Positions 123 to 41,200 of a DNA stretch of 64,000 nt are shown here, one piece after another (the first letter of the stretch is position 1; every line of letters starts with the position of its first letter). The stretch covers positions 1 through 64,000 of the forward strand of contig NW_026861373.1 of assembly GCF_026571515.1 (NCBI RefSeq), given 5' to 3'. The notes beneath the pieces are model-generated. The model searched no databases and had not been told where the DNA came from. It saw only the letters and a program-made list of their open reading frames with translations. Both the position numbers and the translations under genes were made by a program. Source of the DNA: Ruditapes philippinarum (Eukaryota).

Positions 123-282
123 GTTGAAAGCCAATTCACACATTTGTATATAGTATATACCGTGTCAAGCAATACCGACACGTCAAATGAAAATTATGAT
201 GGAAAAAAATACATGGCTCAAGAAAAAGCACCTAGTCTGTTACAATGGAATGACTTCAAGAACTTGACACAAAGAAAACAAG
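123..282 (+). CDS. Gene A exon 1 (hydrophilic N-terminal extension; possible start Met at 213)
   Basis: ttcag|GTT...CAAG|gtatc; open frame VESQFTHL...QRKQ; same 160-nt exon at 35209-35368. Confidence 0.6.
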
Positions 283-3200
283 GTATCAATAAAACACTTT
301 TTTATAAATAACCATGAATGTTCATCGACTTTAATTCATAAAAACATGGATATGCTAATCATTTACTTACTGTTCATTTTAAATTTAATACTCATTTATC
401 AGGTAAACGCACAAAAATAAAAAAATTATTTGAAATAATTTTTAGAAGCAGATTCAGTAGCACCTAAGGACGAGTGCCGCTTATTAGTACAAAAGAAGCA
501 CCCTCAAGAAGAAAGCCAAGAAGCAGACAGTTATGGTCGTCAGATTTCAAGCTCAATGCAAGTTACAAAGGTATGTGATTGTAACCTTTCTCTAATTTTG
601 ATTTGCTATTAAAGTCTTAGTTTTTAGATTCAATGGTTTGATATGTTAAATTGAGGACGCGTAGTATCAACAATTTTTTAAGATATATTTTACAAAATTC
701 CCAAATAAATGTTATCATGTTCTAATACAAGTAAACAGAAAATGCAAAATCCCAAAACTTTACTGTGTCTTTATTCATCTATTACATTAATTGCAAAAGT
801 GTTCGAATTAAAAATAAAGATAAGCATGTCAACTTTTGCAAGCATTACTAAGGTGTGCAGAAAGACGGTTTTCCTTATTTGTGCTTTTCGACTGTGTAAT
901 CCACTTGATATCTTTAAATGAATGCTCTAAATTGGTTGATGTATCTTAATTGGAAAAACATATGATAACATTTTCCATTTTGCCTACAATCTGAGATCAG
1001 ACACACGCGTTATTAGTAAAGCAATGAACTTTTTGTAATGCAAAGGTTAAAGGGACTCCACTGACATTTGTTTAACTGACGGGACTGGAAATATTTTTTT
1101 GAGATTATTACTCCATTTGATGTAGATCTATACTAATAACATATGTGCAAATTTCAGATCATAAGCTCCCTTCGTTTTTCCAGAATAGATATTGTAATAG
1201 TGAAAAGTGACCCAAAATTGAAAAGCGTTTATTATAATAGTCTTCGTCCGTCCTTCCGTCCGTCCGTCCGTCCATCCATCCGGACGTCTGTCCTTCCGTC
1301 CGACATTTTTGTCCGGAGCACATCTCAAAAAAAGAATTTGAGGTATCAACTTGAAACTTCATAGGTGGATAGACCTCATTAAAGAGGAGTGCAGTGTACA
1401 AGAATGATAACTCTACCCTGCATAATTTTTGAGTTATTGCCCTTTGTAATGTTTTAAAATTAATTTTTGTCCAGAGCATAACTCAAAAAGCCTTTGAGAT
1501 ATCTACATAAAACTTCATAAGTGCATAGATCTCACTCAGGAGGTGTGCAGTGCATAAAAATGATAACACTACCTTTCATAATTTTTGAGTTATTGCCCTT
1601 TGCTATTTTTCATACTTAATTTTTCACCTTATTGGAACAAAACACAAATTGTTTGAGATGTCAATATGAAATGTCATAGGTGGATAGATCTTATTGAGTA
1701 TGAATGCTGTGCGCAAGAATGATAACTCTTCCCTATATAATTTTTGAATTATTGGCCTTTATTCTTTTTCATACTATTTTGTCGGGAGCATATTTCAAAG
1801 AGTACTTGAGGTATCTACTTGAAATTTAATAGGTGGATAGATTTTACTGAGGAGGGGTGCAGCACACAAGAATGATAACCTACCCTGCATTATTTTTCAG
1901 TTATTGCCCTTTGTTGTTTTCAGCCATCAGTATTCATATAGGTTTCAAATCTGTAATCACTTCAGCCATCAGTTTTCATTACCAAAAGACCTCTTAAAAT
2001 TAAATTATTCTGCTCTACTACATATACATTCTTCCAATGAGCAAACACATTCGGCGGGGAATGGCCATGTTGACATGGCTCTTGTTATATTTCAAAAGGT
2101 TTTGGCGAAAAAACATCGTGTGTTAGAGTATGAACATCGCAAGTCGGACACGGAGCATGATGTAAAGAAACTGCCCGTTTCAACAGATATCAAAAGAGGA
2201 AGTCTTCGTTTAGATGGTTCAATGTCCTGCACATACCCTATCCGTTTTAAAACATACGTATGTCTGTTGATGTTATATCTTATCAGAGTCATTTCATTTT
2301 TCTTATATCAAACAATCCGAGATACCGAATCTTCTGAGACAAGTTTATAAAGTAATATTTAGTAAGAAAAAGTCTGTAACGCGTTAGAATCAGCGTTTCA
2401 AAGCCTACAGTCATATTTTACAAAATTTATGATTAACAACTTTATTTTAAACAAGCTTAAAGTAAATATTTGCGCTAATTCCGTTCTCTCAATTAGATAT
2501 ATAGATACTTTAATTTATTTACTTGATTAATTTTATTCACATATTATAACAGTGTTTATCCAAATCATATATAAGATACTGGCCTCATAAAATACTTTTG
2601 TTTTGCATAGTAATTCATACTTGTTATAAGAAATCTCAACAGAAAGCTTATCATAATCGTCAAACTATTCTATTTTATAATCATGATGTATAAGTCGCTT
2701 TTGCAGTCAACCCCTTTTAAGTTTGTCAGTTTTATACAATGGACGCAAATAGTTATTCAAAAAACAAAACACAATATATGTGTAAATACATAATGTTAGT
2801 AAAACGATTTCTGATGATTTATAAGTCAATGTGGTCGAGATGTATGCTATTTATTCTTGAGGATAATTTTGTGAATAGATGTACAACTGACACGATTTTA
2901 AAATATATAATTTCCTCCTTACTTGTGGTTGTGTTTTTTTACTTGAACCATTCACGCATTATTTTTACGTTTCTGGTTTACCTAATACATGTACTCACAG
3001 AGATTTAACGATTCATTGAATTGTCTTTTTTTTAATTCAGGTATTTATGATTTTACTGTCTTTCCATCTTTCCGATGCCATGAACATACAACCTCCAACC
3101 GAACACGATCAAAGTCTCACGGAGATACAAACCTTTGTGTCTCTCAGCACTTCTTACTGCAACCCTTCAAATTTAGATATGACACAGACTTGCCTTTTTC

Positions 3201-6200
3201 CAGGAAGTGATAAACTACGAGACTTACTCGATTATTGCGAATTCAATAAAACGTGTTTATCGGGATATACACCTGTATGTGTCAACACTGAAAAAGGAAT
3301 GGCTTTCATCTGCGCTCCAATGCATCCTATATGCAAAAAAGGTTAGCCAAAACAACTTTTTCGTTGCTGTATTTGCAATCACTTTAGCTTTCTTTTGAAT
3401 TGTGACTTTGTCCAAAATTCTCACAGAATAGATCAATGTTTCTTATTTCATTTTCTTCAAATATAATTGTTAGTTATTGCATTTCCTTACATGTCTGTTA
3501 ACAAGAAAATAAATTTGCCACCGTCCAAAACTGCCCTTCTGTTTCTATGGTTCAATGGTGAAAACCAAATCTCTCAAAATATCTAAATATGTAATTCTGT
3601 ATTGAAAAATGCCCTGTTCAATGTATTTGTTTTACTGGCTTTATTGAAAAATAAAATGTACTTTTATAAAACTAAATGAATGATACAATGTCTCTGGCCG
3701 TTGCATTTCTCATTGAAGTGTTTGAGGAGGCTTAATTAAACAGTACTGCAACAATTTCAATTTAGCAATTTTCATACTTTCTGTTTGAGCCGCTCTTAGG
3801 ATTTCCAAATTATCTGTTTCAGTTATCTATCAGTAACCCGTCTGATGTATGTAAAGTTATTATTTTGTGTATAAAGAAGTATCATACATTTTTAACGTAT
3901 ATTGCCTTTTTTGGTTTTAACAAACTACAATATTAGTGCAGTACCTTGAGAGTAGAGTTTGACAGAAATCATGATCACAAGTACAAAAACCTCGCCTTTT
4001 TGGCAGCGATTTATACATTTTTTCATTCATAATTGTATATCAATCGACGAGAGGAGATTCATTAGCCGTCTAAAAGTACATTTGGGCGGGAGATGTTAAC
4101 AATAAATGATTCAAGCGCTTTGCCTAGTATACGAGGAATACGATTTTTAGTGTGGTACACTTTTTTCAGTCTCATTCCTTTTTATTAGGTCATTGGTGGA
4201 GAGTAATGCAAGACGAGGAGAACCCTTCAAAGATTAAAGTTATTGTCGAGAAATGTCCAACTGGTTATTTCCAGGAAACAAATTCAAACTGTATCAATGC
4301 CTGTAGATCAAAGCACTTAAATTTAACAAATATTGAAGAAAGATATTTGATCTATAGTGAAGGTAACCATATCTACCCAACCATTGTCTATTGTAACTAC
4401 AAAGAAGGATACTATAACAGAGCTGGTAGATTTCTATTAGATTACGACAGGGAAAGTGTATATGAACCTTATTTCTGTAGTGGGAACGCTGAAGTAAACA
4501 ATCCATGCGTAGAAGGACAAAAACCTTTGCCTAGTAAGTTAAATCTAAAATTTGATTAACAACTGAATTTTAGGACAGTTCATAAAAATACATTTGCAGT
4601 ATTCGTAATGATTATGAAAAATATTACCTTCTTTTAGTGTGCTTTAATGGTATTTTGATTTATAATTATGACTACTTAGTTAATTTAACAGACACATATT
4701 TTGTTGTTTTGTTTATTGTAGATGGGACATGTGTTCTTCCTTGCAACCCGAATGAATGTAGAGATGACCATAATTACTTTATCTGCAAACAGACTTGCCG
4801 GTAAATATTTCATAACATAGACCTGCGGTCTTCACTCATGAATACCCTTTAATTTATAAGTTCAAGACTTTTTTCCAGTTATCTTACACTATCAAAATAT
4901 ATTTCATTACCAGGAACTGCAAAGCCTTCTTAGATGATAACTCATTTATTTATTAGATCACGAATTTCTTCTTATCTTCTTTAAGTTTCAAAAATAAATG
5001 GACGTTTATATTAATTTTTAATCAAATCACCACCTATCTCGGATCAAAAACATAATAACATTTTTTCAATTTAAAAGTTAAATAAGATTATATTACAAAT
5101 GTACAATATTTTCAAGTGTTTACATATAATGAAGGTTTATGTTGTCTGTGGCACAACAGACAGTTTATGAGTGACAGGCGTTATTGTCTCAAAAAGTTTT
5201 TAACAAAATGTGAAACAATTAAAGCGATGAATTTAGATCATTTGGCAACTACTGGTCCCTCGGAACCTTATATATCTATTTCAAGTATGTAAGTGAATGT
5301 TCTTGATAATAAATAAATAACTTGTTTTGGTAATTTGACCTCATATTTTGGCAGGGACCATCTTAGAGATGGACATTCCATTACAGTTACTGTATCAGAA
5401 AATCCTGACTTAGACACCGGTATGATATTTTACTCAGCTACATATAAATGCATTGTAATTTGATTATTTCAAAACGTTATTGCTACAAACATTAACCTTA
5501 TCACATGTATCATAAAATCTTTTTTCAGTACGTTTTAAATACATAAATTAAAAAACTTTAGGACGTTAATAGTATCCTTTGATTGTCTTAGAGCTTTTAT
5601 GCGTATATTAGTGTTTGATGTACCACACCGGGTATGCCCTTCTTGTTTTTGTTTGGGGTTCAAGCCGCTGGTTCTTGTTGCTGGATCGTGCAGGAGTTGG
5701 GTTCATTGAACGCCGCCTTTCTTTGTTGATCTTAGTTATCAAATTTTAGGAACGTTTCAATCTTATGTTTGTTATTTTAGATATATCCCGCTGATCACTT
5801 TAAGTCCCATTTGACTGTACGTAACACGATTATATGTAATCCTTTCCTTGGTTTATCTTTATTCGAGAATGACACTCTTCATTCAAAACTGGTAATAAGT
5901 TAATATCAACTTTAAAAAAAAAGCACAAAACAAACCAAGCCAGTTAGAACTTGTATTATAACTCGCTTTGAAAGCTCTTGCTGTTTGAAAATGCAATTTC
6001 GAAGCACTCGTTATGACACATTGTCGCATTGCGTTATTGACAGATGTTGCCGAATGCGATGGGGAACCATGGGTTTGTGAAAATGGGATATGCAAACAAT
6101 CTTTAAACGAACATGTTTGCCAATGCAACCCAGGATTTGTGATTGATGGGGAAACTGGAAGATGTATAGGTACATAAAAAGGCTACTCCTATCAATTCTA

Positions 6201-9200
6201 TGCATTCATATTAGTAAGAGGGACTTAATAAACTTTAATTCTCTGTTGCATACACTGTATACTGAAAATGTTGCAAGCTTTTTTCACATTGTAGAAAAAG
6301 TATTTGAAATTCAAATCGTTATTGAAGTTAAAGAGTATCATTACATTCGAGTAATCAGTTAGTATTTCATAAATAGAAATAAAGTTAAATACTTTTAGTT
6401 ACGTCTTATTCGAACTGTATTGTACATATTTGAATGTTACACCTTGGCCAAAGAGGTGATTATGACTGCTTTTGTGTATGTAAACACAACAGCTTGTAAT
6501 ATTTTTTAATTAATGGTGTGCTCCCATAAACTAAAATTCATCTCTTATTTATATGTACTATTAATTGCTTAATATGTTGATTCTTTTAACCAGTAAGTTG
6601 TGTACGGTCAGTGATTTGTTTTCGCTTTACATGAATATTGACGAGTAAATTTCAATCTCAGGATCAGATGTGACCCCCCAAACAGAACCTTTAGCAACGG
6701 GAATCATCTTTGTTATTGTTACCTGTGTGATATTTGGTATGTATCATTCGCATTTACATTTTTTTTTTCGAACGTACTCATCAGATTCAGACAAGTGCTT
6801 TTAAAAGCATGTTCTACATTAAATTAAGAATTAAACCATTGATAGCAATTTAAAATATTTTTTGTATGATATGTAAAATTCAAATATGAATTCAAAAATA
6901 AAAAGAAAATATATGTCGACGTGTTGGTATATGTACAATTCCGTGCTAAACGTATATCTAAAAACTGTCAAAATAACCACAATTTCAAAAACAAACTTTT
7001 ATAATTTTTTATACTTTTCCAAAGCAATCAAAATATGGAAATTTCATGACCAGTTTCCACATTACTTTTTTGGCGAAATGATATAAAAAAAATTCCCTCA
7101 AATATGCGGAAATAAATATGTATGACAAAAAGTATAACCTGTCTTTCTTATTTCTGACTTGAAAAACAACAAATTTTGAAAAATGTTATTATTATTTTGG
7201 TGTTATTTTTTTAAACAGAGTATAAAATAAATATACAGTCATTAAAAAAAAAATAATCAGATATTGATTTATTATTTTTGTCAGGTTCACATTCTTAAAA
7301 AATTAAATGCTACATGTAAACTTCCAAAATCTAACAGGAAAATTATTGAAATGTATTACAGGAATATATATTTCATCATAAGAATGAATAACTCTATCCT
7401 TTGATTCTGTAAAAAAACAATAATCTGAACCCATTCGTTACAGAATGAGTTTTTCATGTTTCTTAACTCAGCAAAAATACAAAAATGCAAAAAAGAGAAA
7501 TCAATGTATAAATAAACATTAATTCTGCACATAAATGAAGATATCGAAAACTGTTTTCATACAATTTTCAATTTGTTTTATATATTAAAGGTAAAATTGT
7601 GAATTCAAAAAGACAAAGAAAAAATATATGTTGACATGATAGATTATTTGTAAACGGGCAGTTTCGATGTTTACCACATATGCTCACTGTCAAAACGACC
7701 GCGCTTTCTTTAGAAATAGTTGTGTTGTACACAATGCATTCAATTTGTTATATAACCCAAAAATGAGGAAATATAAATTATTTAGAATATTCATAACCCG
7801 TATATATATATATTATTTGTAAAAGTCACGACATAAGTCTTTTTCCATCAAACTGAATGATATATTGACAAAAAATAAACATTTAATGAGAATGAAAGTC
7901 CGGGTTGACTGAAGTGAAAAGAAATCAGAGAAAAGAACTTCATATTTTAATCTTTAAATTTTTAACGATTTCTAATTATTTTCAGTTTGTTTGATGACCA
8001 TTATAACTGTGTTTTGCACTCCAAAAAAATGCAAGTATAATATTATTTCTATATTTATTACATTTAAATATGCAATTCGGTTCTATTCGGCACTTAAAAC
8101 TGTACAAGGGGCGTAATAATTTAGAACTTTTCAATTATCTATGATCATGAAGAGATAAAAATGGACCAAGTCTTTAATTTACATATTTTTGTTGACAGAA
8201 ATGTACTTTATAATTGAATCAATTTTGCAGTTAATTCTTTAAGGGTTTTTAATTCTTAGCTTAGATTATCAACTGAAAGTACGTTATTTCCTTTATGTAT
8301 CAACTGACAAAGCTAATAAAGCGAAACATGTATTGATATCTAAATTTGTGTTAGTTTTGATATATTTATCCTATAATCAACTGGTACGCATTCTTACAAT
8401 GTATGCATATCAAAACCGTTGTTCTCAATTAAACGGCACACTTATTTGCAATGATTGTAGTCAATATCATGAAGCTTACATGTCTTGGTGATTTATGTGA
8501 TTCTTCTTTATAAAATTATTATTTGTACATGCTGGTAAATGTGCTACATCGTTTAAGAAATCATTTTAAACAGTTCGAAAACTTAAATCAATGTAAAGCT
8601 ATCAACCTATGATATAAATGTCACGTGTAATTGATTAAAACAATATTATTTGATTGTATAGAAAACTATATTTCAAAACAGGTAAACCATCGGGTGAATT
8701 AGAAGACGGAAACTCTTCTCAGCATGATATCTCTTCATCTGACACAGGTACTAATTTAATATGTTATTTAACATGTTGTTTACATTTGTAAAATATTTAT
8801 TCAAAGACTTGTTTTCTATCACAGATAATACTTAATTTCATTTCCCAAGAAAATTGATGACAAAGATGATTTCTATTTTATTTGGATTTTTTCTTTATAT
8901 AAATAAATAGTATAGACTTTCCGATCTACAATTTAAATTTCGCTAGATATTGGTTGGCTACTTATGAGATGCAACTGATATTTCACAAAAAAACAGATCC
9001 AAGAAACATTGCCAACATTATGTAATAACATATGTCAAAGAGCGTGAATCGCGAAGACAACGCACTTATCGTATCTTATTAATTGCATTATACATGTATA
9101 CCGAACAGAAATGAGTAAATATACAGTAAAATGTTGTTGTGTTTTCAATGAATTCATCTAGTTTGTTTACCTTTATAATCCTGTCATAAACAATGTAAAC

Positions 9201-12200
9201 AAAGTATCATATAAAAAATAAAAACTTTACAAAAAAATGTACTCATTTAATCAATAATTTCTCTATAAAAAGACTTAAACATTTCACAACTCCGTCTTTC
9301 TGTTTCGAGTTCAGTATCGACGTCACTTTTGATAGTCGCTTGAAGGGGTGCGTGGGTTTTCATTTGATAAAATTTACCCAAGAAGAGTGTGTCGCACCTC
9401 AAAGGGATTCGAATAGGGCCGCAATGAGTGAACTTTCCTAGTTAATGCCGTATAGACCTCCTTGAGAATCATTATTCCACGCTTTGTACCGAATAGTGAT
9501 CCATTAGTTTACGAAGAGCTGTTCTTGGAGTATTAGTTGGTTTTTTAGGATAGAGATCCACAAGCACAAAAACAATATAAAATGAGTTATTAATTGTATA
9601 ATTAAACACATGATTCAAGACTAAAGCAACATGATTTTCTGTTTGTCTTGCAAATTATTGTATGTCCACCCATTTATCATATGTCTCTATATTTGGTAAC
9701 CTGGCTGTCTATCTAACTTTCGATCCGTCAGTCTGCCTTTGTACAATTGATATGCCTGTTTGTAGTTGGTAATTCTGAGTTATGTTAGACTTGTGAGAAC
9801 ATGCGGTATGTTTATTTGGGTTTTGTTTGTCCGTCCGTTGTCAGTCCTGATTCAGTTACATGAAATTTATTTTTATTGAAATCATGGCCTTAGCGAGCAG
9901 ATAGTTTCTACGTTTATGAATGAATGAGTCAAATGAGTTAGATTTTCGATCAATATCTGAAATTTCTAAATACTTTGTGAAAATAAGCCAACAGTGAAAA
10001 CCACGACCAAGATCATACAGAAAACCAGCTGGCTATGGGGAATAAGCACAGGAGAAATAACTTTAACTTATATTAAAGACCCTGTACATCATTACAAAGT
10101 CTATTATTTCAAAATCTAAGAGTAAGGAGAAGATGATAGGGAAGAATATTTAATTTATGTTTTCTCTTGTTAACGCCAAACATTAAAATGTTCGGGTTGG
10201 TACGTACGTTTTTCCGTTTGTCTGTACGTACCCTGTTCTTTGTTTTACTATACCGTTAAGAAGGATTAGTCGTTGGACATTTCCCATGATCAGTAGATAA
10301 CCCCTATTGCTATTTTGAAGTTTTAAGGTCAAAGAACTAGGTTACAATGTCCATGACATTTAAAAGATTGTCCGACAAATAGCAAAAACGACATCATTGC
10401 CTACAATCAAAATACTTATTGTAGAGGATTGTCATGACTTGGTAATGGCGGCAATTGATTTTAAGGTCACTATGTAAAAAGTTTAGGCCATCGCGACATT
10501 GACCACCAATTCCTTTTCATGCCAATATCTAGAAAAAGCTTTCGCGGAAAATCAATAGATTTGACGTTATGGTTGATCATAACAAGAAAATGACAGCACA
10601 TTTTAATTTCGTTACGTCAAAGGTAACGGTCACAGAGAATATATGTAAAATGTCTTTTCTATCAGTCAGCTAACAAGGAACTAAGTTTTGTTTTAAGAGG
10701 TTGAAATGCTATGTATTGAATTTAAGGTCATTAGGTCAATCTTACAGGTCACACTGACACTGTGTTGATTTTTTGTCTAATTAAAATCTGGAAACATCGT
10801 CTTAGTTAATGAACTTTGTATGGAAATTGCCATTCATGGTCATGGATATAAGTGGCAGTGACACAAACATGTCTTTAGTTTTGTTCAGTACATTTTATCA
10901 ATGTTTAAAAAACCTTTAAGAATTGCGGAGTATATTGAACATTGATTGATACTGCATATTGATTCTGGACAATGAAGTAAGGGTTAAAAAATTCACCACA
11001 CTTGACTAACATGTATATGACGATAACTGTCAAGAAGAAATGGTTTGCCTTGAATTTTAAATTGGTTTGAATCACCGTGTTTATCCAGTTACGCCGGAAT
11101 GTGAAAATAACGCACGATTCGTGCAATAAGTAATGCAGAATTTGGGCAATAAATGACGGATACCTGACAGTACCATATATGAAAAAATCACTTTTTTTCG
11201 GCGTTACCACCAAGCACTATTTATATACATAAATAAAAAAACTACAATCACATTTATCAGCTTATTTTCGAATTTCTGTCACCAGAAGTTTAGTAAATGT
11301 CACTTACCTACCGAAAAACGAAATTATACAATATAATATGCATAGTTGTACCAAAAAGCCAAAATCACACTCAAAACGGTGGTCAAGCCATCATTTTCAC
11401 GAATTATCTTGAAAAGTATGCAATTTCGTGGAAACAATCTTAGTGAGGGATTAACGCGGCCATAGGCGGGTATTTTTTTCAGTATGGTTAAATAAAAAAA
11501 TAAATTAGCCAGTCTACTTACCGCGAGGTATCCGCCATCTATTGCACAATTTTGCTGTTCTTATTGGACGGATCGTGGGATTTTTTTCAAATCCGACGTT
11601 ACTGGATATACACGGTGTAAATTGATTCTTAATCATCAATACTATAAATGTAAAACTGAGCTAGATAAATCAAATCATAATGAGGCAAGATCATTGGGCA
11701 TGTTTTAAACTGTTTCAGATAATGCACCATTTCCTAATGGCCCTTGTGAAGAGGAGAAGGAACATCTGTTAGCTAATTCAAATATTGGTAAGAAAACAAA
11801 GAAACAAAAAAAACAACAAAAAAACAAAAAAAACAAAACAAAAAAAACAAAAACAACCAAAAAAATCGAGACCTAAGCAAATTGTAGAGGTGGTAAAGTC
11901 AAGTGGTTAACGTGTCGAAATAGCTACCTAAGAATTGCGGTAAGAAGAAAGCTTTCATTGTTTCCATGAACAAGAACTTAACGCTCGTTCGTAAGTACTG
12001 GTTTATTGCAGGAACGGAATCGAGAGTGTATATATGAGCAATCGACTTTAATTGAATTCTGTATCAACTTAAACTATTATATAATTTTTGCCTCACTTAT
12101 GGAAATCCCGCTGATACTAAAGATTTAAGTAACGATCAGTTTTGTGTGAAATCAGTATTCCCCCATGTTGTTGTTGTTGTTTTTTTTGTTGTTCACGGGA

Positions 12201-15200
12201 CATTGAGCAAATATCTGTGTTTTGTTATTTTGAAATTCAAGCATTTTCCTTCTTAACTATTATGCCACCGCAACATCTATAATTTATACCAAACTTACTA
12301 AGATTGTTCCTTGGGTGAGGGGCCTCCAAAATTGTTCAAAGAATTGAAAATCTGGGTGCCATGACAAATTAAACGAATTATAAGAAATTCAAAAAAAAAA
12401 TCTTTTAAAAACCCAATAGAGCAAGAACATTGATATTTTGCATAAGGCATTGTCTAGTGTACCTCTTCAAATATTGTTTAAATCAAAGCCTGGGGTAAAA
12501 ATTGGCACCGCCCCTAGGTAATGTGTTTTCATAAATGACTACATAGACTAGAGCTTAGATGTTAAGCATGAAACATTGTCTTGTAAACCTCCTTTTAGAT
12601 TATTCAAATTATAGCTTAGGAGTCAAAATTTGCGCTGCCCTAGGAGGTCATGGCTTTTCTCCAAATCATAGTTAAATAATGAAAGGAAACAACTCGTGTT
12701 GGAGTGTCATTTTACATGTGTACATAGTATGTTTTTTTTCTGAAATAATAATGAATCAATAGCTTTGAGTTTGTGTTAAGGTCATAAGGTCTAGAAAGGG
12801 AGATGTTTTAAATTAATTTTCAAAGCTGTTTATAAACTGATTTGATATCATGACCTCTAGCGATATAGATGTTTGGTTTGTAGGGAAATTTACGTAATGA
12901 TTTGAGCACATTGTAAACAATTATTTATTTTCTGTAACAACTCTCAAATAATATTTTCTTTCCTTATAATGTCCGTCTGAATCAAACACAATTATTGTCT
13001 TCCTTGATATACACAACCTTTAAAAATGGCGGCCAGTTCATTAAGCCTGGTCTAATATAATTTTGCAGTAATTAACGGAAATGAGATCGGATGGTGTGAT
13101 TTTTTATTTTACTAGTATTTTTTGTTTTAATTATTAAAATAAGAGATCATTCATACTTTTTAAATAAAATAGATAATATCATCGCCATTTAATGTTGATT
13201 ATCGGACTTATTTTGCAGCTCAAGACATCTTGAAATTCGACTTAAATTGTGGCTAAAAGTGGGGAAAACAGCTTTTAAAAATTAAAGCTTATATTGAGGA
13301 AATTTCATTTATACTGTCTAGTTTTTATGTATAAAATAAAAAGAAAATTTGTTTGTAAAATGTAATTTTATTTTACACACAAACGAACAAATATCCTCTA
13401 TGTAATACTGTAAATACCTAAATGTTTGTCTATTTTAAATCAATTATAAATTTATAATTGCACTATGGCCTTTGTATCTAAACATTTGACACATCTGCAC
13501 ATTGTCTTTTATTTCACATGCTTAAATATTACATTTAAATCCAAATTTACGAGATACTTCTGGATTTTGGTAAAATTTAATTGTAAAGAAACAAAACAAC
13601 TACTTCTTTTCCTACTATTACGTATTGTGCGGTGGCATATCATTTTTCACAAACGTTGCTCTTAATACAGATTATGTTTACCTCAGGGAAGATCATAGCT
13701 ATCAAAAAAAAATCATTTTTTTAAATAATTAACACATTTTACTCTCGGACAAATGAAAGGTTCCATTATTGTAACGTACGTTTCCGGCTTTAATAATTGA
13801 ATTATTATGTCACATTCTTTGCCATTACAAATGTATTTCGTCTTCATTATGCAATAAAACATTTTCATAAGACAACTTATGTACACATTTTAGTTAAGTC
13901 TCAATAATTATTTTTTATTTTAACAAACGTAATCAATACTTATGTTTAATAAGTTAACATCGTGGTTCATGGATGTCGCTGAGACACTTTAAAGACATTT
14001 TCAATGGACAAATATTTCTGTAACTTTAACTTAGTTTGGTGGACCTCTGAGGACATCATATTTTGTTACCGATTTCAGGTGATACAAAGTCAAATCCCGG
14101 AGAGTTCAAAAAAGATGCCGATGACACTAACACACAAGCTGCAACGAATTGTCTGAACAAGCTTTTCCTGAGCTGCGGCGCAATAATACTCAAGAAAAAG
14201 GTTATTGGGTCTGCTTTCCGTGTTGGTCCATGTTATGTGATGACAGACTTTCATGTTATTCGTGATTTAAGTCGAGGTTAAATTTGCTTTTATTAACAAA
14301 TAGTATACATGCCTATGTAAAGGAGAATGATGACTTATATATTTTTATTAGCTTTATACTAAAACATAATCCAACCGATTTACATAGATGAAGCATGTGA
14401 TGAAATGTTCGTTTAGGATTTATGTATTTATTTATTTATTTATTTATTTAAAGATACATTTCCTTTTTGCTGTCTGCTGTACTTATTAATGGTTTGTGTT
14501 GTAGCAGTTTAATAAAAATGTTGCTATTTCTGTTAAGATCACTTTTCCACTACAAAAAACATAATTATATCCGATAATATTGTAAAAGCTTAATAGAATT
14601 CCGATCAATTTAGCTCAAATATGAAATCAACCTTTCATTTGATAAATATAAACACTGTGGTACTATGAATAAGTCTATGAAAACGATTTTGTCTCAAATA
14701 CATGTACTACAAAAATAGTATAATGTCATATAGTTTTTGTTTTTTTATTTACATTTCAGATTTGACGGGAAAAACAGACTATGACTTTTCACGGATTGAA
14801 CGAGAACATAATTTACATGTAAATTTCAACGGTTCTTTCATCGACAAACACAGACGGGATATTCTATTAAAATATCGATATCATGATGAGGAAAACGATT
14901 GTGCTGTACTTGAAATAAAAGATACCGACCTGCACCAGAACCTCCCGGACCCTCTATTTCTATGGAAATACGACAGCTATCATTTGCGTATAAACGAAGC
15001 TTTTCTCATAGGTTATGGTAATAAGAACAACCCAAATGAAAAACATTCTGATAAATGTATCATAATCGGAGAGGACCCTTTTAATACAAGGTATAGGGAG
15101 GCCCTAGCAAGCTTGCATCAAAATGCAGAGGTGTACAAAAATGACATACAAGAACGAGGATTTGATACATCCTCTGTAGATCGGGGATATTATGATGTTG

Positions 15201-15466
15201 AAAACGAAAGGTTATTTAAATTTGATTGCTTTTTGGAAAAAGGTTCATCAGGTGCCCCAGTTATTACAAATGAAGTAAATTCACCAAAGGTGATAGGCTT
15301 ATTTATAGGTGGTAAGCCAGATTTTTTCTATGAATTGTCTGACATGCAACAAGCCGCGTTTGAAAGGAAATATTTATTTGAGGTTGGAGTAAAAATGAAT
15401 TGGATATACCAAAGAATGGAAAGGGAAGACCCGGACCTTGCTTCTGAAATATTTCCTACAAATTAA
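123..15466 (+). CDS. Gene A: single-pass receptor-like protein, Cys-rich (TNFR-like)+EGF ectodomain, TM, cytoplasmic FAM111-like trypsin-fold serine protease (multi-exon; 5' end possibly incomplete)
   Basis: Exons 123-282, 446-570, 2099-2257, 3041-3341, 4189-4533, 4722-4800, 5355-5419, 6044-6169, 6662-6736, 7986-8030, 8682-8747, 11719-11787, 14079-14276, 14760-15466. All have AG acceptors and GT donors (one GC). Phases are compatible and the total is 2520 nt = 839 aa + stop. Triad: His 14252 (TDFHV), Asp 14897 (DCAVLE), Ser 15248 (GSSGAP). Paralog B shows the same exon layout. Confidence 0.85.
446..570 (+). CDS. Gene A exon 2 (N-terminal extension)
   Basis: tttag|AAGCA...ACAAAG|gtatgt; phase 1 to 0; same 125-nt exon at 35536-35660. 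Confidence 0.65.
1049..2085 (+). mobile_element. Non-autonomous Helentron/HINE (Pearl/CvA-like) element in gene A intron 2
   Basis: (CGTC)n microsatellite at 1246-1300, about four ~155-bp core repeats, 3' hairpin gccatgt-tg-acatggc then tcttgtt; absent from the paralogous intron of B; 5' boundary approximate. Confidence 0.75.
2099..2257 (+). CDS. Gene A exon 3 (ends with the n-region of a signal-like leader MSCTYPIRFKTY, Met 2222)
   Basis: aaag|GTTTTG...ACATAC|gtatgt; many synonymous differences from 36222-36380. Confidence 0.75.
3041..3341 (+). CDS. Gene A exon 4: hydrophobic leader VFMILLSFHLSDA plus Cys-rich ectodomain
   Basis: attcag|GTATTT...AAAG|gttagc; 7 Cys conserved with B exon 4. 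Confidence 0.85.
4189..4533 (+). CDS. Gene A exon 5: TNFR-like cysteine-rich region (CPTGYFQ...C...C...YCNYKEGYY)
   Basis: ttag|GTCATTGG...CCTA|gtaagt; 102/115 aa identical to B exon 5. Confidence 0.9.
4722..4800 (+). CDS. Gene A exon 6: Cys-rich (NGTCVLPCNPNECRDDHNYFICKQTC)
   Basis: tgtag|AT...GCCG|gtaaat; paralog 38341-38419. Confidence 0.85.
5355..5419 (+). CDS. Gene A exon 7: linker
   Basis: gcag|G...ACCG|gtatga; phase 2 to 1; paralog 38991-39049. Confidence 0.8.
6044..6169 (+). CDS. Gene A exon 8: EGF-like domain (DVAECDGEPWVCENGICKQSLNEHVCQCNPGFVIDGETGRCI)
   Basis: Six-Cys EGF spacing with C-x-C-x-x-G-F; phase 1-1 exon; paralog 40483-40602. Confidence 0.9.
6662..6736 (+). CDS. Gene A exon 9: stalk and first half of the TM helix (LATGIIFVIVTCVIF)
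   Basis: ctcag|GA...TTTG|gtatgt; hydrophobic run. Confidence 0.85.
7986..8030 (+). CDS. Gene A exon 10: second half of the TM (VCLMTIITVFC) plus basic stop-transfer TPKK; GC donor
   Basis: ttcag|TT...AAAT|gcaagt, aligned with B's ATAT|gtaagt; the GC donor keeps the frame into exon 11, whereas the nearby gt at 8035 does not. Confidence 0.75.
8682..8747 (+). CDS. Gene A exon 11: juxtamembrane cytoplasmic linker
   Basis: 66 nt, phase 1-1, same length as B 43449-43514. Confidence 0.8.
11073..11617. mobile_element. MITE with ~34-bp terminal inverted repeats
   Basis: caccgtgtttatccagttacgccggaatgtgaaaa versus the reverse complement of ttttcaaatccgacgttactggatatacacggtg; additional subterminal inverted repeats. 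Confidence 0.7.
11719..11787 (+). CDS. Gene A exon 12: linker with EEEKEHLL dileucine motif
   Basis: tttcag|AT...ATTG|gtaaga; homologous exons at 46718-46816 and 51841-51976. Confidence 0.8.
11890..12075 (+). mobile_element. Degenerate tRNA-derived SINE
   Basis: A-box-like head and agtactgg...caggaa core shared with the 39256 copy. Confidence 0.45.
12965..13400 (+). mobile_element. Interspersed element, same family as 42520-43065, with the terminal hairpin deleted
   Basis: Shared tctgaatcaaacacaattatt...aaaatggc...gctcaagac...atcctctat. Confidence 0.65.
14079..14276 (+). CDS. Gene A exon 13: protease N-terminal helix and catalytic His (GSAFRVGPCYVMTDFHVI)
   Basis: FAM111/Trypsin_2-like motif; tttcag| and |gttaaa sites. 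Confidence 0.9.
14760..15466 (+). CDS. Gene A exon 14: protease Asp and Ser motifs, stop codon
   Basis: DCAVLEI, LIGYG, FDCFLEKGSSGAPV; AATAAA at 15546-15551. Confidence 0.93.
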
Positions 15467-21640: not shown

Positions 21641-23151
21641 GATTTTTTAGAAGCTTTTGAAAGTCCATCAAACACTTCAAAGACGTGTTTACAAGGTAAA
21701 ATATCTAAACCAGTTACATTATTATTGTTTCATTGCATAAAATACTTTTTACCGCTCACTAAAAGTAATAATATTCCTGCTATGAAACATGTAAATGTTC
21801 TGCTTGTTGCACGTTTGGTTAAGATTTTGTAAGCTGGCTGGATATCTTCCTGGTATGAAAGAATCCAAAGATGGCGAGATTCGAACCCAGAGCGGTGAGG
21901 GACAAGTGGTTTGAAAACAACGATCTTAACCATTTGGCTATGGACGCACAATAAATGAAACTAAAAAATAAATATTTAATTGATTTAAAGGAGGCGAACT
22001 TAAAAAGGAGGTGGACGATACATTCACTCAAAGCGCAATGGCAAATCTAATCATCAGTTTAATGTCGTGTGGCGCCTTGATCAACGACGGAAATCTGAAA
22101 GGAACTGTTTTTCGGGTTGGTTCTAAATATGTGATGACGGCGTATCATGTGATAAAAGACATTAAACGTAAGTTTCTGTATTAGTTTACTGAATAATCAT
22201 GCCACAATCGTACTTTAAATATGTAAACTTTATGAAAGGGCTCAATCAAACCGAGCTGCAACATTTTCAATTTGGCCGCTTTGTGCGATCTTTAGGGATT
22301 CTTTATTTCTCTATTTTAATTGAAACAAAACCTTTTTAAAGTAGTAGCTGTGAACATAAATTTTGTGAATATGATGTGAAATCATCATTATTTAAATAAC
22401 AAAAATTATTTCCAAAGCATATTGAAAATCATAATATAAACATAACTGCATAAATATCACTTTTGTGACTTTCACAGATTTAATAGAAGCTGCATGTGGG
22501 GACATATTTGTGAATTTCGAGGAATCTGTATGTAATGTTTCCTGCGAAACGTACCGGGTGAACATTGAATTCTACTCTGAAGAAGCAGATATAGCAATTC
22601 TAGTGTTACATGTTGCGAACTTGGAGAAACTCCCAAAACCATTATTGCTGTGGCCTAAAAATGTAGATTTCCTAAAAATAAGAAACATTTCTGTTATTGG
22701 TTATGGACATGCAGACAGTCCATACAAGAAGCATTTGGAAAAATGTCAAATTCTAACAGATCCATTAACGGAAGAAAGAGTGACTGCAGCTAAGGATTGT
22801 CTGCAGAAAAAGAAAGACGAATTCATTCAAGATATAATATCGAATCGTAAAGATCATACATCTGTTGAAAGAGAATATGCAGAGTATAATAATAGTAATA
22901 TAATAAAATTCGACTGCTATATGGCAAAAAGGTTATCCGGAGGCTCAATTTTAACAAATGAACATGAGACTCCTAGAGTTATTGGCATGGTTATAGGAAT
23001 GCGACCCGAGTTGTTCTATAATATATCCCCTAATAAGCAAACCTCATTTCCAAAGGAATTTATGTTTGAATTTGGTGTAAAAATGCATATAGTGTATGAA
23101 CAACTCCGTTCAGTTAATCCTGCTCTTGCACAGGACATTTTTTCCACCTGA
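21641..23151 (+). CDS. Protease-only module X (FAM111-like): standalone cytosolic paralog or alternative 3' end of gene A
   Basis: Exons 21641/21651-21695, 21991-22167 (GTVFRVGSKYVMTAYHVI; His 22146), 22478-23151 (DIAIL Asp 22588; KRLSGG Ser 22936); AATAAA 23226. No ectodomain or TM exons seen between 15.5 and 21.6 kb. Confidence 0.8.
21830..21950 (-). mobile_element. tRNA-derived SINE fragment
   Basis: Minus strand A box tagccaaatgg and B box gggttcgaatc followed by a non-tRNA body. Confidence 0.6.
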
Positions 23152-35208: not shown

Positions 35209-38200
35209 GTTAAAAGCCAACTCACACATTTGTATATAGTATATACCGTGTCAAGCAATACCAACACGTCAAATGAAAATGATGATGGGACAAAATACAT
35301 GGCTCAAGAAAACACACCCATTCTGTTACAATTGAATGACTTCAAGAACTTGACACAAAGAAAACAAGGTATCAATGAAACGCTTTTTATAAATGACCAT
35401 GAATGTTCATCGACATTATATAAATTCATAAAAACATGGATATGCTAATCATTTACTTACTGTTCATTTTAATTTTCATACTCATTTATCAGGTTAACAC
35501 ACAAAAATAAAAACATTATTTGAAATAAATTTTAGAAGCAGAATCAGTTGCACCTAAGGACGAGTACCGCTTATTAGTACAAAAGGAGCACCCGCAAGAA
35601 AAAAGCCAAGAAGCAGACAGTTATGTTCGTCAGATTTCAAGCTCAACGCAAGTTACAAAGGTATGTGATTGTAACCTTTCCCTAATTTTGATCAGTTATT
35701 AAAGTCTAAGTTTTTAGATTCAATGGTTTGATATGTTAAATTGAGGAAGCGTGGTTTCCACAATTTTTAAGATATATTGACAAAATTCCCAAGTTAATGT
35801 TGTCATGTTTCAATACAGAAACAAAAAGAAATTGCAAAATCTCAAAACTTTACAGTGTCTTTATTCATTTATTACATTCATTGCAAATGTGTTCGAATAA
35901 AAATATAAATATAAGCATATCAACTTTTGCAAGCGTTACTAAGATGTACTTATTTGTGCTTTTCGACTGTGTACTCCACTGGATGATTTTAAATGAATGT
36001 TCAAATTGGTTGATGTATCTAATCGTGAATTACATATGATAATATTTTCCATTTTGCCTACAATCTGAAATCAGACACACACTTTATAAGTAAAGCAATG
36101 AACTTTTGGTAAAACAAAAGTTAATGTTACTTTGCGATTCTGCTCAATGTATGCTACTATTATAATTTGTTTCCGGTGTCTTTTTAACAGATTTTGTTCT
36201 CGAATTGTTATATTTCAAAAGGTTTTGGCGAAAAAACATCGTGTGTTAGAATATGAGCATCTCAAGTCGAACATGGAGCATGCTTTAAAGAAAATGCCTG
36301 TTTCAACAGACATCAAGAGAGGAAGTCTTCCTTTAAATGGATCGATGTCCTGTACATACCCTATCCGTTTTAAAACATACGTATGTCTGTTGATGTTATA
36401 TCTTAACAGAGTTGCCATTTTCATATTTACTTATATCAAACCATCCGAGACAGCGAGCCTGTTAGGAATCTTCTGAGACAAGTTTATGAAAAATAACTAG
36501 TAGGATAAAGTCTGTAACGCGTTAGAATAAGCGTTTCAAAATATATGATTAACACTTTTAATTAATTTTAAACAAGCTAAAAGTAAACATTCGCGCTTAT
36601 TCCGTTTTTTCCATTTCACTTATTTAAAGATATATTGCTTTACTAGTATTTACTTGATTAATTTTATTCAAATGTGATAACAATGTTTATCCAATACGTA
36701 TGTGAATAAATACTCATATTAAATACTCTTGTTTTGCAAAGTAATTAATACTCACAGAGATTAAACGATTAAATAATTTTTCTTTTTCTAAATTCAGGTG
36801 TTTATGATTTTACTGTCACCCTATCTTTCCGATGCCATGAACATACAACCTCTAACCGAAAACGATCAAAGTCTCTCGAAGATACAAACCTTTGTGTCTC
36901 TCAGCACTCCGTACTGCAACCCATCAAATTTAAATATGACCTGCCCTTTTCAAGGAAGTGATAACATGCAACTATTAATCGATCGTTGCGAATTCAAGAA
37001 AATGTGTTCATCAGGATACACACCTCTATGTGTCAACAATGAAAAAGGAATGGCTTTCATCTGCGCTCCAGTACATCTTAGATGCGAGAAAGGTAAGCCA
37101 AACTAACTTTTAGTTGCTGTATGTTCAATCTCTTTAACTTTCTTTTGAATTGTGATTTTGTCTTTCTTTACAGAATAGATTATTTTTTCTGATTTTCCTT
37201 TTCTTACAAAATTGGCAAGATAGTTATTGCATTTCCTTACATGTCTGCTAACAATAAAATAAATGTGTCATGGTCCAAAGACTGTCCTTTCAATCGTACA
37301 ATGGTGAAAAATCATCAAATCTCTCAAAATATCTGAAATTAGTAATTTTTTATTTAAATTTGCCCTGTTCAATTAATATGCTTTGCTTGTATATGGTATA
37401 TTTTATTTTTATTGGCTTTATTGTTAAATTAAAATGTACTTTTTTAAAACTATGAGTCATCTATAAAATGTTTCTTTGTCGGCCGTTGCATTTCTCATTG
37501 CAGTCTTTGAGGAGGCTTAATTAAAACGAGTCCTGCTTTTCAATTTTGCAATTTTCATACTTTCTTTTAGAGCAATTCATACATTGTTCATTCATAATTA
37601 TATATTTTTTATTCATAATCGTATATAAATTAGCGTCAGGAGATTCATTAGCCGTCTAAAAGTGCGCACTTGGGCGGGAAATTTAAATATTAAATGATTC
37701 AAGCGCCTTGTCTAGTGCATACAGGAATTCGGTTTTTAGTGTGATTCTCAAATACTTAAGTTTCAGTCTCGCTCCTTTTCATTTAGGTCATTGGTGGAGA
37801 GTAATGAAAGACGAGGAGGACCCTTCAAAGATTAAGGTTACTGTCGAGAAATGTCCTACTGGTTATTTTCAAGAAACAAATTCCAACTGTATCAATGCAT
37901 GCAGATCAAAGCACTTAGATTTAACAAATATTGAAGAAAAATATTTGATCTATAGTGAAGGCAACCACATCTCTCCAACTATTGTCTATTGTAACTACAA
38001 AGAAGGATATTATAACAGAGCTGGGAGACTTCTATTAGATTATGACAGGGAAAGTAAACATGAACCATATTTTTGTAGTGGAAACGCTGCAAAGAACAGC
38101 CCATGTGTAGAAGGACAAGAACCCTTGCCTAGTAAGTTTTATTTGAAGCATGATTTAGAATCAAATTTCAGGACGATTGAAATGATATTTGCAGTATTTG

Positions 38201-41200
38201 CAAAAATTATATAATGAAATATAGTAAATATATTTTTAATGGTATTTCGTTTTACAATTACTGACCAATCGGTTAAATTAACATACTAATTTTTGTTTCA
38301 GGTGCTTTGAAAATTTAAAAAAAAAATGTGTTTATTGTAGATGCAACATGCGTTCTTCCTTGCAACCCACATGAATGTAGAGATGATCATGATAACTTTA
38401 TCTGCAAACAGACTTGCCGGTAAATAGTTCATTACCTAGAACTGCAGTCTTAACTAATGAACACATTTATCTATAAGTTCAAGAACTTCTTCCAGTTATC
38501 TTACATTACATAAAATATATTTCATTACATAGAACTTCAAAGACTTCATTTATCTATGTCTTATTTCAGGAATTTCTTCTACTTATCTTAGAATCTAAAA
38601 TAAATGAACATCTTTATTCATTTTTAATCAAACCACCACCTATCTTGGATCAAAAACATAATCACATATTTTCATTAATTTTAAAATTTTAATAGAATTT
38701 CATAACAAATTTGCAATATTTTGAAATGTCTACATTTATCAAGAAAAAGGCTGTATGTGGCACTACAGACAAATTATGAGTAACAGTCAATCAGTGTTTA
38801 CTTATAATCTCAGTAGGTTAATCATATTAACAAAATGTGACGAAATTGAAGAGATGAATTTGATTAATTTGGCAACTTCTGGTCCCTTGGAATGTTTAAT
38901 ATCTATTGCACACTATATAAGTATTTGAGTGAATGTTTTTTGATAAAAAATGGATACTTCTTTTGTAATTTTATCTCTTATTTTTTCCAGGGACCAGATT
39001 GGAATTGGACATTCCATAACAGTTATAGATAAACCTGACTTGGACACCGGTATGATACTTTACTCTGCTACATAAACATGTATTGTATTTTTATTATTTC
39101 ATATAGTTTTACTACAAATGTAAGCGCATGAATATCTTATTCACCATAACACCGTTTGTTCAGTATCTTTGAATAAATCGTAAAAGATTGAACGATATAT
39201 GATTTACTTTCCTCCGAGCTATGTGCTAGTTTCAGTCTTAGATGTTTTATATTTGGCGAGCGGTAGCCTAGTGGTTAAAGTGTCTGCCTCTCAACCAAGA
39301 GATCATGGGTTCGAGCTCTACTCGGGTCACGACAATGTTTTTTTCATATGAGACCAGTACTGGTTGGTTTCAGGAAGCGGACTCAAAAGTGTTAAATATA
39401 ATATCGAGCTTAAATAAACATGTTTAACCCATATTTGACTAGTTTTAAATTTTGTTTGCAATGGGTTTAAGCTATTACCCGTTGTTCAGAATAACCTCAT
39501 ATTTCATTATTATAATTTACTAAGTAACTGTAATCTGCCAACGTTTTATAAGTAAACCTTTCTCCGGAGATGGACATAATGCTCAAATGTCGAAATGTAT
39601 GCCAAGTTGAGCTTTATTTGACATGTACTTCGCTTGGCTTCGATAATCGAAATAGACCAATAAATTATGATGGTAGATGTTTTGAATAAAGTACATTTTT
39701 ATGCCCCCACAAAGTGGGGGGGGGGGCATATAGCGTTGCACTTGTCCGTCCGTCCGTCCATCCGTCCGTCCGTACGCCTGTCCGTACGTCCCGAAATCTT
39801 GTGAACGCAACTCCTCTTAAACCGGATGGCAGATTTTGCTTAAACTTCCAGGGATGAACAACCTTAATGTGTAGATTGTAGTAAAGGAAGGAATTTTTGC
39901 TGCGACCAAATTTAACATAATTATGGCCCTTTAATGATTTTTTCACTATATACCATATAGACATTTTGTGAACGCAACTCCTCTTAAACCGGATGGCAGA
40001 TTTTGCCTAAACTTCCAGGGTTGAACAACCTTAATGTGTAGATGGTAGTAAAGGAAGGAATTTTTGCTGCGACCAAATTTAACAGAATTATGTCCCTTTG
40101 TTATTTTTTTCCCTATATACCATATATATGTTGTCAGTGGGGGCATCCGTGTCCTTTGGACACAGTTCTAGTTTTGTATAGAAACTGTCCTAAATATAAT
40201 ATGACTTCCCCCTCCTTTTAACAACTAAACGCTACCATTAGAATAAGACGAATTCATAGAAAAATGTCTAGGTCATATGGGGTATTGCCTATGTAAAATA
40301 AAAAATAACTTTTAAATGACGAATTGTTATTTTAACTTTTAGTTGCACATTCACCATTTCCTCTTGAATCGGCATTTTATCACATAAAGAAAAGATAGAA
40401 ATAGACAAAAACCTCAAAGTCCGCTGTTGATACATTGGTCCTATTTATTGAAAACGTAAGTAATTGTATTAAACTGTTTCAGCAGAGTGCGACGGAGATT
40501 CATGGGTTTGTCAAAATGGAATATGTAAACAATCTTTTAACAAGTATGTCTGTCAATGCAATCCAGGATTTGTGAAGGATAGAGAAACTGAAAAATGTAT
40601 AGGTAATTGGTTAAAACTAGTTCTTGTACAAAAAATGCTGAAATTGTCTAAGCCTAATATTTATTATTCTAACACGACCCGCATGTTTCGCTATTGAATA
40701 AAGAAGAACCGAAAGTGTGTGTTATTATGCAATAAAGTCACAGTTGAGTTCTATATTTAGATATGTGACGTAATCATTATACATGTGACGTAACAACTAA
40801 AAGAATCCGACGCGCTGAAAATAAGTGGCGCAATTTTGCTTAATATCAGGTATGTTAGCATTTTTTTTGTTGATGTCGTGTTAGAATCGAAATAATATAT
40901 CCAAATCTGTGAATTTATCGCTTGATAACATCACTGTTTCTCGTTCGGATGCGCATCATTATATCACTCGGGCTACGCCCTCGTGATATAATTCGTCGCA
41001 TCCGAACTCCAAACAGTGATGTTATTGAGCGATAAAATCACTGTTTGGGATATATTATTTCTTAAACAATAGTCCGTCCGAAATTCAAACTTCCATATAA
41101 ATGGAAGGAACATCATTTCTATCATGACGTAAGTGAACGAACTTTTAAGATACCTTATTGAAGAAAATCAAAATTGTAGATCTACTTAAAAATTAGATGG

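Follow-up and report, generated by a model that had tools for sequence, protein, structure and literature searches.

The stretch of DNA analysed here, which we call the window, comprises the first 64 kilobases (kb) of contig C9860 (NW_026861373.1) in the assembly of the clam Ruditapes philippinarum, which totals 1.4 gigabases. Its left end carries a gene of 14 exons on the forward strand (positions 123-15466), called gene A in the following. We show that gene A encodes a predicted single-pass membrane protein in which a cysteine-rich (Cys-rich) domain and an EGF domain are followed by a transmembrane (TM) helix, a disordered linker and a protease of the FAM111 type. A search with the last exon retrieved RefSeq XP_060554410.1 (P0001 in our searches, 842 residues), the product of LOC132715424, at 100% identity over residues 609-842. 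Gene A is already present in the annotation, without a functional description there: the product is entered as an “uncharacterized protein” and P0001 has no functional name in RefSeq or UniRef.

Gene structure and transcripts

Exons were translated singly, and the database protein P0001 stood in for the spliced product in the searches. Each exon ends in the phase needed by its successor, and an exon-by-exon check showed the translations of exons 2-14 to be contiguous, exact pieces of P0001. Exon 1 matches P0001 less closely than the later exons and with an indel of two residues, and residues 1-33 of the protein have no exact match with the window. Since the acceptor AG of exon 1 stands at 121-122 and the contig begins at window base 1, we expect gene A to have another 5' exon that the contig does not reach; the 5' end of gene A lies off the contig or was patched in the RefSeq model. 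No better copy of this end was found elsewhere in the assembly, and the paralogue models start with one additional short exon. All introns are GT-AG except the one at 8031-8681, a GC-AG intron (donor GCAAGT) whose removal gives ...PKK-C-KPSGE... in frame. Both the GC donor and the frame are kept in the paralogue on contig C11291. A GT donor at 8035 was considered for exon 10 and rejected, as it brings a TAA directly after the TM helix, while the GC donor at 8031 fits the RefSeq protein, the paralogue and the RNA contigs. The downstream GT, if used, would give a tail-less, decoy-like receptor.

Four public RNA-derived runs were mapped on positions 8600-14599, and the exon joints upstream of this interval rest on the phase check and on homologues. 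The joint of 8747 to 11719, with GT..AG ends, occurs in contigs of three runs (X1, X2 and X7) representing three studies. A 507-nucleotide contig of X7, whose library is recorded as RNA-Seq, joins 8700-8744, 11716-11786 and 14078-14276 and has a loose end made up of the 30 letters that open the last exon; a 1551-nucleotide contig of X2 covers 14078-14276 and continues into the last exon. Towards the membrane, the X2 contig over the 8682 exon continues upstream of 8675 as a loose end of 255 letters. This end reads exon 10, which encodes the TM helix in its second half, and confirms the GC-AG splice, and the upstream loose end of the corresponding X7 contig consists of exon 10 letters, two of them differing. 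Taken together, the contigs of three studies connect the second TM exon with the two linker exons and the two protease exons.

The earlier proposal that ectodomain side and protease are encoded by a single gene and a single mRNA is borne out by the fitting phases together with the RNA contigs that join TM to protease. We also looked for the opposite outcome, transcripts assigning the two parts to separate genes, and from TM to protease it is excluded by the spliced contigs. A gene-model artefact that fused two neighbouring genes, one with the ectodomain and TM exons and one with the protease exons, is hence barely credible: the introns between the linker exons are long (2-3 kb) and repeat-rich, as one might expect of such an error, but contigs of three studies run from the second TM exon through the linker into the protease, no exon phase is violated, and the same architecture recurs in paralogues, in other bivalves and in proteins of 619-667 residues encoded on contigs of ~2.6 kb. 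Within the introns, the stretches 11000-11600, 12400-12600 and 13200-13400 reach contig depths of up to ~2800 with many odd joints and are modestly covered by raw RNA reads; they are probably transcribed repeats or transposon fragments and not exons of gene A. Directly after the exon 12 donor, a low-complexity, A-rich run (AAAACAAAA-like, 11790-11865) was treated as a repeat in read mapping. The exons, the parts of the protein they encode and the basis of each assignment are collected in Table 1.

Table 1. Exons of gene A in the window, with encoded parts and supporting evidence (AF2, AlphaFold2; pLDDT, predicted local distance difference test; dN/dS, ratio of nonsynonymous to synonymous substitution rates)
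Exon and encoded part	Positions	Strand	Basis
Exon 1, N-terminal extension	123..282	+	P0001 mapping, 85% identity to residues 5-56
Exon 2, N-terminal extension, predicted disordered	446..570	+	P0001 residues 58-98; pLDDT <40
Exon 3, N-terminal extension, absent from paralogue isoform model	2099..2257	+	dN/dS 0.24-0.32 vs paralogues
Exon 4, signal-like segment (RFK/TYVFMILLSFHL/SDA) and first Cys-rich subdomain	3041..3341	+	AF2 pLDDT 80-94, residues 180-290; no solved-fold match
Exon 5, conserved core of family-specific Cys-rich ectodomain	4189..4533	+	At least 17 further genomic copies; dN/dS 0.13-0.34
Exon 6, end of Cys-rich domain; first codon (split with exon 5) is Asn367 of sequon LPN-G-T-C	4722..4800	+	Homologue alignment
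Exon 7, short stalk, predicted disordered	5355..5419	+	AF2, phase check
Exon 8, one six-Cys EGF domain between phase 1 introns	6044..6169	+	Pfam EGF 21.8 bits; phmmer fibrillin cbEGF
Exon 9, juxtamembrane part and first half of TM helix	6662..6736	+	AF2 helix 468-492
Exon 10, second half of TM helix and PKK; GC donor at 8031	7986..8030	+	Letters in loose ends of X2 and X7 RNA contigs (X7: two letters differ)
Exon 11, predicted cytoplasmic linker, acidic, Ser-rich, disordered	8682..8747	+	Joint 8747 to 11719 in runs X1, X2, X7
Exon 12, predicted cytoplasmic linker	11719..11787	+	Contig pieces 11716-11786 joined to 8700-8744 and 14078-14276
Exon 13, F551-K-K...DDT motif (candidate autocleavage site), helix alpha1, first beta strands, His600	14079..14276	+	Family alignment, RNA contigs
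Exon 14, rest of FAM111-type protease (Asp654, Ser771 in GSSGAP, C-terminal helices), stop codon	14760..15466	+	Searches, alignment, Foldseek

Ectodomain, membrane helix and topology

The first 151 residues of P0001 are predicted to be disordered (pLDDT <40 in the AF2 model) and lead into a short helix (residues 147-164) with the n-h-c pattern of a signal peptide, RFK / TYVFMILLSFHL / SDA. The leader of the original prediction was thus recovered with its n-, h- and c-regions, but it stands ~150 residues into the RefSeq model and not at the N-terminus. In the close Ruditapes paralogues (3/3 RefSeq models), 105-150 residues precede the signal-like segment. Furthermore, exon 3, upstream of this segment, has a dN/dS of 0.24-0.32 against both paralogues, implying that the upstream extension may be truly coding, which is odd for a protein targeted to the endoplasmic reticulum (ER). 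The homologues P0006, P0009 and P0022, which come from other samples, have canonical signal peptides at the N-terminus.

The Cys-rich region spans residues 180-395, and its first part is confidently modelled (pLDDT 80-94). It is followed by one EGF domain with six cysteines (residues 416-456), recognised in the exon as PF00008 at 21.8 bits against a cutoff of 21.5 and having a fibrillin cbEGF as its best sequence match in the PDB (phmmer, E 1.4e-4). Out of 37 cysteines, 24 lie in the ectodomain (residues 165-456). A sequon N-x-[ST] at Asn367, in the context LPN-x-[ST]-C, is conserved without exception among the homologues that carry the ectodomain and align at this position (9/9). The predicted TM segment is a hydrophobic helix of 27 residues (467-493), LATGIIFVIVTCVIFVCLMTIITVFCT, flanked by acidic residues on its N-terminal side and by PKKCK on the other, in agreement with the helix followed by KK that had been noted before. 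The adjoining linker of 57 residues (494-550) is disordered, acidic and Ser-rich.

The ectodomain had been described as TNFR/EGF-like. Its Cys-rich character and the EGF domain stand, the latter just above the Pfam cutoff, but the likeness to TNFR does not. Pfam gave no match to TNFR_c6 repeats in the gene A ectodomain, whether exons or P0001 were searched, and a comparison of the ectodomain family profile with a TNFR/NGFR alignment (hhalign) matched the TM alone. The profile search of the PDB returned no match to the ectodomain, Foldseek nothing better than E 0.2, and VIA-align against 48,161 chains Z values of 2.6 or lower. The sole hint of TNFR came from the ESM Atlas, where feature scores remained <0.8 and TNFR families appeared at a template modelling score of ~0.3 on a poor model (mean pLDDT 0.50). 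The ectodomain-only homologue P0100 was modelled by AF2 at a mean pLDDT of 60, and a word-based search for relatives of the ectodomain found three Ruditapes paralogues and no others. We treat the Cys-rich core as a family-specific domain with unassigned fold; its second subdomain is poorly modelled, so a new fold is not proven.

With regard to topology, the Cys-rich and EGF part very probably faces outward and the protease the cytosol, because the charges follow the positive-inside rule, the sequon is conserved, cysteines and an EGF domain mark the N-terminal side, homologues have signal peptides, the protease module occurs beside cytosolic domains in related proteins, and FAM111 is intracellular. 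The same observations strongly favour the cytoplasmic protease behind a single TM that had been proposed, as a predicted topology.

Two exons, one of 75 nucleotides (6662-6736) and one of 45 nucleotides (7986-8030), share the TM helix between them. Both are multiples of three and phase 1-1; skipping of either or both keeps the frame. In Mercenaria, the isoform models X4 and X5 of LOC123533884 (P0103, P0104) are without the TM. These two observations would suit a protease that works outside the cytosol, as a soluble secreted (or luminal) fusion with the ectodomain produced by in-frame skipping of TM exons. We regard this as very unlikely, since X2 and X7 contigs (one each) run from the 8682 exon into the second TM exon, the protease has neither a zymogen start nor a conserved pattern of disulfides, proteases of the FAM111 kind reside inside the cell, and cytosolic domains occur in paralogues.

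The FAM111-type protease and its bivalve family

The protease region (residues 551-842) is modelled by AF2 at pLDDT 88-98. The trypsin fold with intact triad seen in the original prediction is present as His600, Asp654 and Ser771, the last within GSSGAP, and among 45 aligned sequences these residues are kept in 38 (His), 43 (Asp) and 43 (Ser). Equally in line with what had been noted, the protease has no IVGG-type zymogen start and not the disulfides of secreted S1A proteases, as out of its six cysteines none falls in a nearly invariant column of the family (0/6).

On P0001, Pfam detected the EGF domain and Trypsin_2 and nothing else; Trypsin_2 scored 25.8 bits, just below the cutoff of 27.6, and the paralogues lie above the cutoff. 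A single-sequence phmmer search of P0001 against the PDB gave EGF matches only and none for the protease. Reaching FAM111A took a profile of the family (36 members) rather than a single sequence. With this profile, human FAM111A (8S9L/8S9K) was found at E 4e-21 over the whole domain, including helix alpha1 and the C-terminal helices, and the next families, staphylococcal Spl and HtrA, followed at 4.5e-6 or weaker. In the Foldseek search with the AF2 model, six FAM111A chains occupied ranks 1-6 (E 1.8e-12 to 1.3e-10, target template modelling score 0.69-0.75), ahead of a second tier with TMPRSS2, factor XI and others from 3e-9. The protease is nearer FAM111A than any other solved protease, over the whole domain, and the assignment to the FAM111 type, made at first from motifs, is confirmed by both the profile and the fold.

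The two N-terminal ubiquitin-like (UBL) domains of FAM111A, its single-stranded DNA-binding region and, in mammals, its PIP box were not detected by Pfam in P0001. Judged by its domains, P0001 does not qualify as a FAM111A orthologue over the whole protein, its N-terminal part being the predicted ectodomain and TM. FAM111A-like proteins of marine invertebrates are also without UBL, DNA-binding and PIP elements (review, PMC9798293).

By its sequence relationships, gene A belongs to a bivalve expansion of the protease module. We counted the last protease exon at least 29 times in the genome and, beyond gene A's own, the main ectodomain exon at least 17 times. Close paralogues are gene B (LOC132715423, product P0107), a second full receptor-protease gene in the window at 35209-48381, and LOC132720279 (P0106), a copy of the whole locus on contig C11291 with ~77% nucleotide identity. 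The window also holds a protease-only unit at 22504-23148, which matches the 267-residue representative P0007. Just beyond the window, another copy of the main ectodomain exon lies at 64654-64932 of C9860 (48% identity), and the tandem array probably continues past the window end.

Between genes A and B, the synonymous divergence (dS) amounts to 0.18-0.42 in the ectodomain exons (0.80 in the short EGF exon) and to 0.9-1.3 in the protease exons, and the TM and linker exons have no counterpart. The divergence of the two genes looks like a mosaic history, with a shared sensor and a swapped tail. Against the paralogues, dN/dS is 0.38-0.49 in the protease exons, 0.13-0.34 in the ectodomain core, 0.53-0.79 in the first ectodomain subdomain and near 1 in the TM and linker. 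These ratios indicate purifying selection on the protease exons, with a stronger constraint on the ectodomain core and a weaker one on its first subdomain.

Among 1.84 billion representative proteins, 92 matched the last exon at E 0.001 or better, and all those for which a source name was obtained come from bivalves (Ruditapes, Mercenaria, Mya, Dreissena, Mytilus). A survey of molluscs for the same architecture, suggested at the outset, yielded proteins with the same Cys-rich ectodomain, TM and protease in several clams. They include P0006 and P0022 (619-667 residues), whose contigs of ~2.6 kb are likely cDNA, as the open reading frames leave at most 0.6-0.8 kb non-coding. Two tandem genes of Dreissena combine true TNFR_c6 repeats with a TM and this protease module; the repeats were recognised in P0029 by Pfam at E 1.4e-18 and in P0123 by precomputed Pfam, and the ectodomains are nearest to p75NTR. 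The likeness to death receptors that had been put forward is supported by these two genes, but the ectodomain of gene A itself has no TNFR signal.

In other members, the protease module is preceded by HEPN_DZIP3, with or without a Death domain (Mya, Mercenaria, Ruditapes), or by a cGAS-like Mab-21 domain with TPR (Mercenaria), and a Mytilus protein has a B-box after the module and a weak HEPN match in front of it. Moreover, P0090 (Mercenaria LOC123563542) shows a sub-threshold Rel-homology match (20.8 against 27 bits) before the module, and in P0023 the module is followed by the start of a Roc/AIG-like GTPase; further immune-type fusions are possible in these two proteins.

Possible mode of action and comparison with known systems

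What is new here, as read from the predicted domains, is that a protein of single-pass, death-receptor-like build would have a FAM111-type protease as its own effector. We think it rather probable that this protease serves as the effector of a receptor in innate immunity or cell death, because related bivalve proteins carry the module beside TNFR repeats, HEPN-Death or the cGAS-like Mab-21 domain. An output in death or restriction is also plausible, since hyperactive FAM111A kills human cells; this death is caspase-dependent, and FAM111 activity leads to apoptosis (PMC7534640).

How such an effector might be switched on is suggested by the segment in front of the protease. The motif F-K-K-x-x-D-D-T-L-[ST]-Q, directly before alpha1, is the most conserved stretch outside the catalytic core. 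Phe551 stands 22 residues before S-[VC]-G, a spacing that matches that of Phe334 to Ser356 in FAM111A, and the column at -22 has Phe in 27 out of 33 sequences and Leu, Tyr or Cys in the remainder. According to PMC10920703, FAM111A is chymotrypsin-like with a preference for Phe at P1 and autocleaves after Phe334, and the published construct of its domain begins directly after this residue. From this correspondence we infer that the clam proteins can cut themselves after Phe551; the protease would thereby come free of its membrane anchor.

The helix NTQAATNCLNKLF, residues 561-572 in the model, aligns with alpha1 of FAM111A. The earlier statement that FAM111A dimerises through the helix before the protease fold agrees with PMC10920703, where alpha1 is the dimer interface and mutations of Val347 and Val351 break the human dimer. 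The role of dimerisation helix assigned to NTQAATNCLNKLF agrees with this alignment, but the contact residues do not follow. A homodimer prediction for residues 545-842 gave no verdict and counts neither for nor against dimerisation. As the contact residues are not conserved in gene A and the dimer prediction is without verdict, an alpha1 interface is at most a candidate route of activation.

In the mechanism that we propose, engagement of the ectodomain would bring the cytosolic protease domains together, and their proximity would activate them and/or permit the cut after the conserved Phe551. Through this cut, a fragment of 291 residues with the protease (552-842) would be set free in the cytosol and cleave its targets there. 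We put forward activation by induced proximity with self-cleavage after Phe551 as a tentative model, which falls short of being probable. Slightly more doubtful still is its extension to a ‘receptor serine protease’ as a class of its own among enzyme-linked receptors of the cell surface, which would be switched by clustering, free itself and run a direct antiviral, antiparasite or death programme without adaptors.

Several findings weigh against the proposed receptor. The position of the signal-like segment casts some doubt on the ER targeting of this paralogue, and the ectodomain core has no recognisable relatives outside its own family by Pfam, PDB profile, hhalign, Foldseek or VIA-align. 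Soluble forms may exist, judging by the TM-less isoform models of Mercenaria. The dimer contacts Val347 and Val351 of FAM111A correspond to Thr564 and Asn568 in gene A, and in the family alignment the first of these positions is mostly Val or Leu and the second variable. In addition, the raw-read run X21 showed no exon coverage over 8600-14599, suggesting that expression of gene A depends on the sample and is not found everywhere.

Alternatively, the protein might be a membrane-tethered cytosolic protease ungated by ligand, with an ectodomain for adhesion, sorting or localisation and a protease that is constitutive or otherwise controlled and has its substrates near the membrane. Neither a ligand nor a conserved dimer interface was found, the autocleavage of FAM111A is independent of dimerisation (PMC10920703), and the dN/dS of 0.13-0.34 in the ectodomain core fits a conserved partner and not an arms race. 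Nevertheless, we consider this unlikely, given that TNFR repeats, Death, HEPN and Mab-21, with which the module is fused, are typical of sensors and adaptors, that an unregulated protease of the FAM111 type is toxic in human cells (PMC7534640), and that the N-terminal subdomain of the ectodomain evolves faster (dN/dS 0.53-0.79).

The reading of the protease as an immune or death effector behind a receptor has consequences beyond this locus. Kinases, phosphatases, cyclases and TIR domains are among the enzyme domains described for animal receptors that cross the membrane once; to our knowledge, no animal single-pass receptor with an intracellular serine protease has been described. The claim that the architecture is undescribed agrees with searches of a literature library, which found no description of it in papers on FAM111 in molluscs or bivalves, on FAM111A-like proteins or on receptors with intracellular proteases. 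If the gating is real, these proteins would form a new class of enzyme-linked receptor, and if the ectodomain gates the protease, sensing and proteolytic execution would be united in one polypeptide. The Dreissena version would then be a p75NTR-like death receptor with the death domain replaced by an executioner.

The ancestral role of FAM111 is debated between antiviral restriction and a protease of the replication fork, and the occurrence of the FAM111 protease in immune-type architectures of invertebrates supports a defence origin of the family. The module would also add a new effector to the expanded immune repertoire of bivalves, which is of relevance to disease of this farmed clam. The model can be tested, as it predicts a cut after Phe551 and a requirement for Ser771, as well as activation when the protein clusters.

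Among known systems, human FAM111A, together with FAM111B, stands nearest; the protease domain of FAM111A (8S9K, 8S9L) is the best match in profile and fold, and the match extends from alpha1 through the two barrels and the helical insert to the C-terminal helices. Both FAM111A and the clam protein have the triad, the G-x-S-G-x-P motif and a Phe at the autocleavage position, and both are intracellular, a location known for FAM111A and predicted for the clam protease. However, the clam protease sits on a TM and an ectodomain instead of a nuclear targeting region, the dimer contacts are unconserved, and identity to the solved domain is ~16-18% in structural alignments. Type II transmembrane serine proteases such as TMPRSS2 and enteropeptidase are likewise membrane-anchored trypsin folds, but they have the protease outside the cell, with a zymogen site and S1A disulfides, whereas the clam protein is predicted to have the opposite topology and is without both. 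In bacterial conflict systems (Kaur et al. 2020, 2021), a trypsin-fold peptidase is also a swappable effector behind sensor or adaptor modules; these systems are prokaryotic and multi-gene, and they were compared with the clam protein at the level of the general fold.

Closer in lineage are receptor-like proteins of oyster (Kaur et al. 2021, PMC8195603), in which a Cys-rich ectodomain and a TM are combined with DED, TRADD-N and an effector that varies. They share with the clam family a lineage-specific expansion in bivalves, a receptor-like build and swappable cytosolic effectors of immune or death type, and their partner set of HEPN, Death and Mab-21/TPR is the set found with the clam protease module. 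The oyster proteins carry DED and TRADD-N, of which none was detected in the clam protein, the comparison concerns the layout, and a trypsin-fold protease is not among the oyster effectors listed in the relevant section of PMC8195603. With the TNFR death receptors, represented by p75NTR (TNFRSF16), the clam protein, whose ectodomain is without detectable TNFR repeats, shares the type I layout of a Cys-rich ectodomain, a TM and then a predicted cytosolic module of death or immune type; in the clam, this module is the protease enzyme itself, as opposed to a death-domain adaptor.

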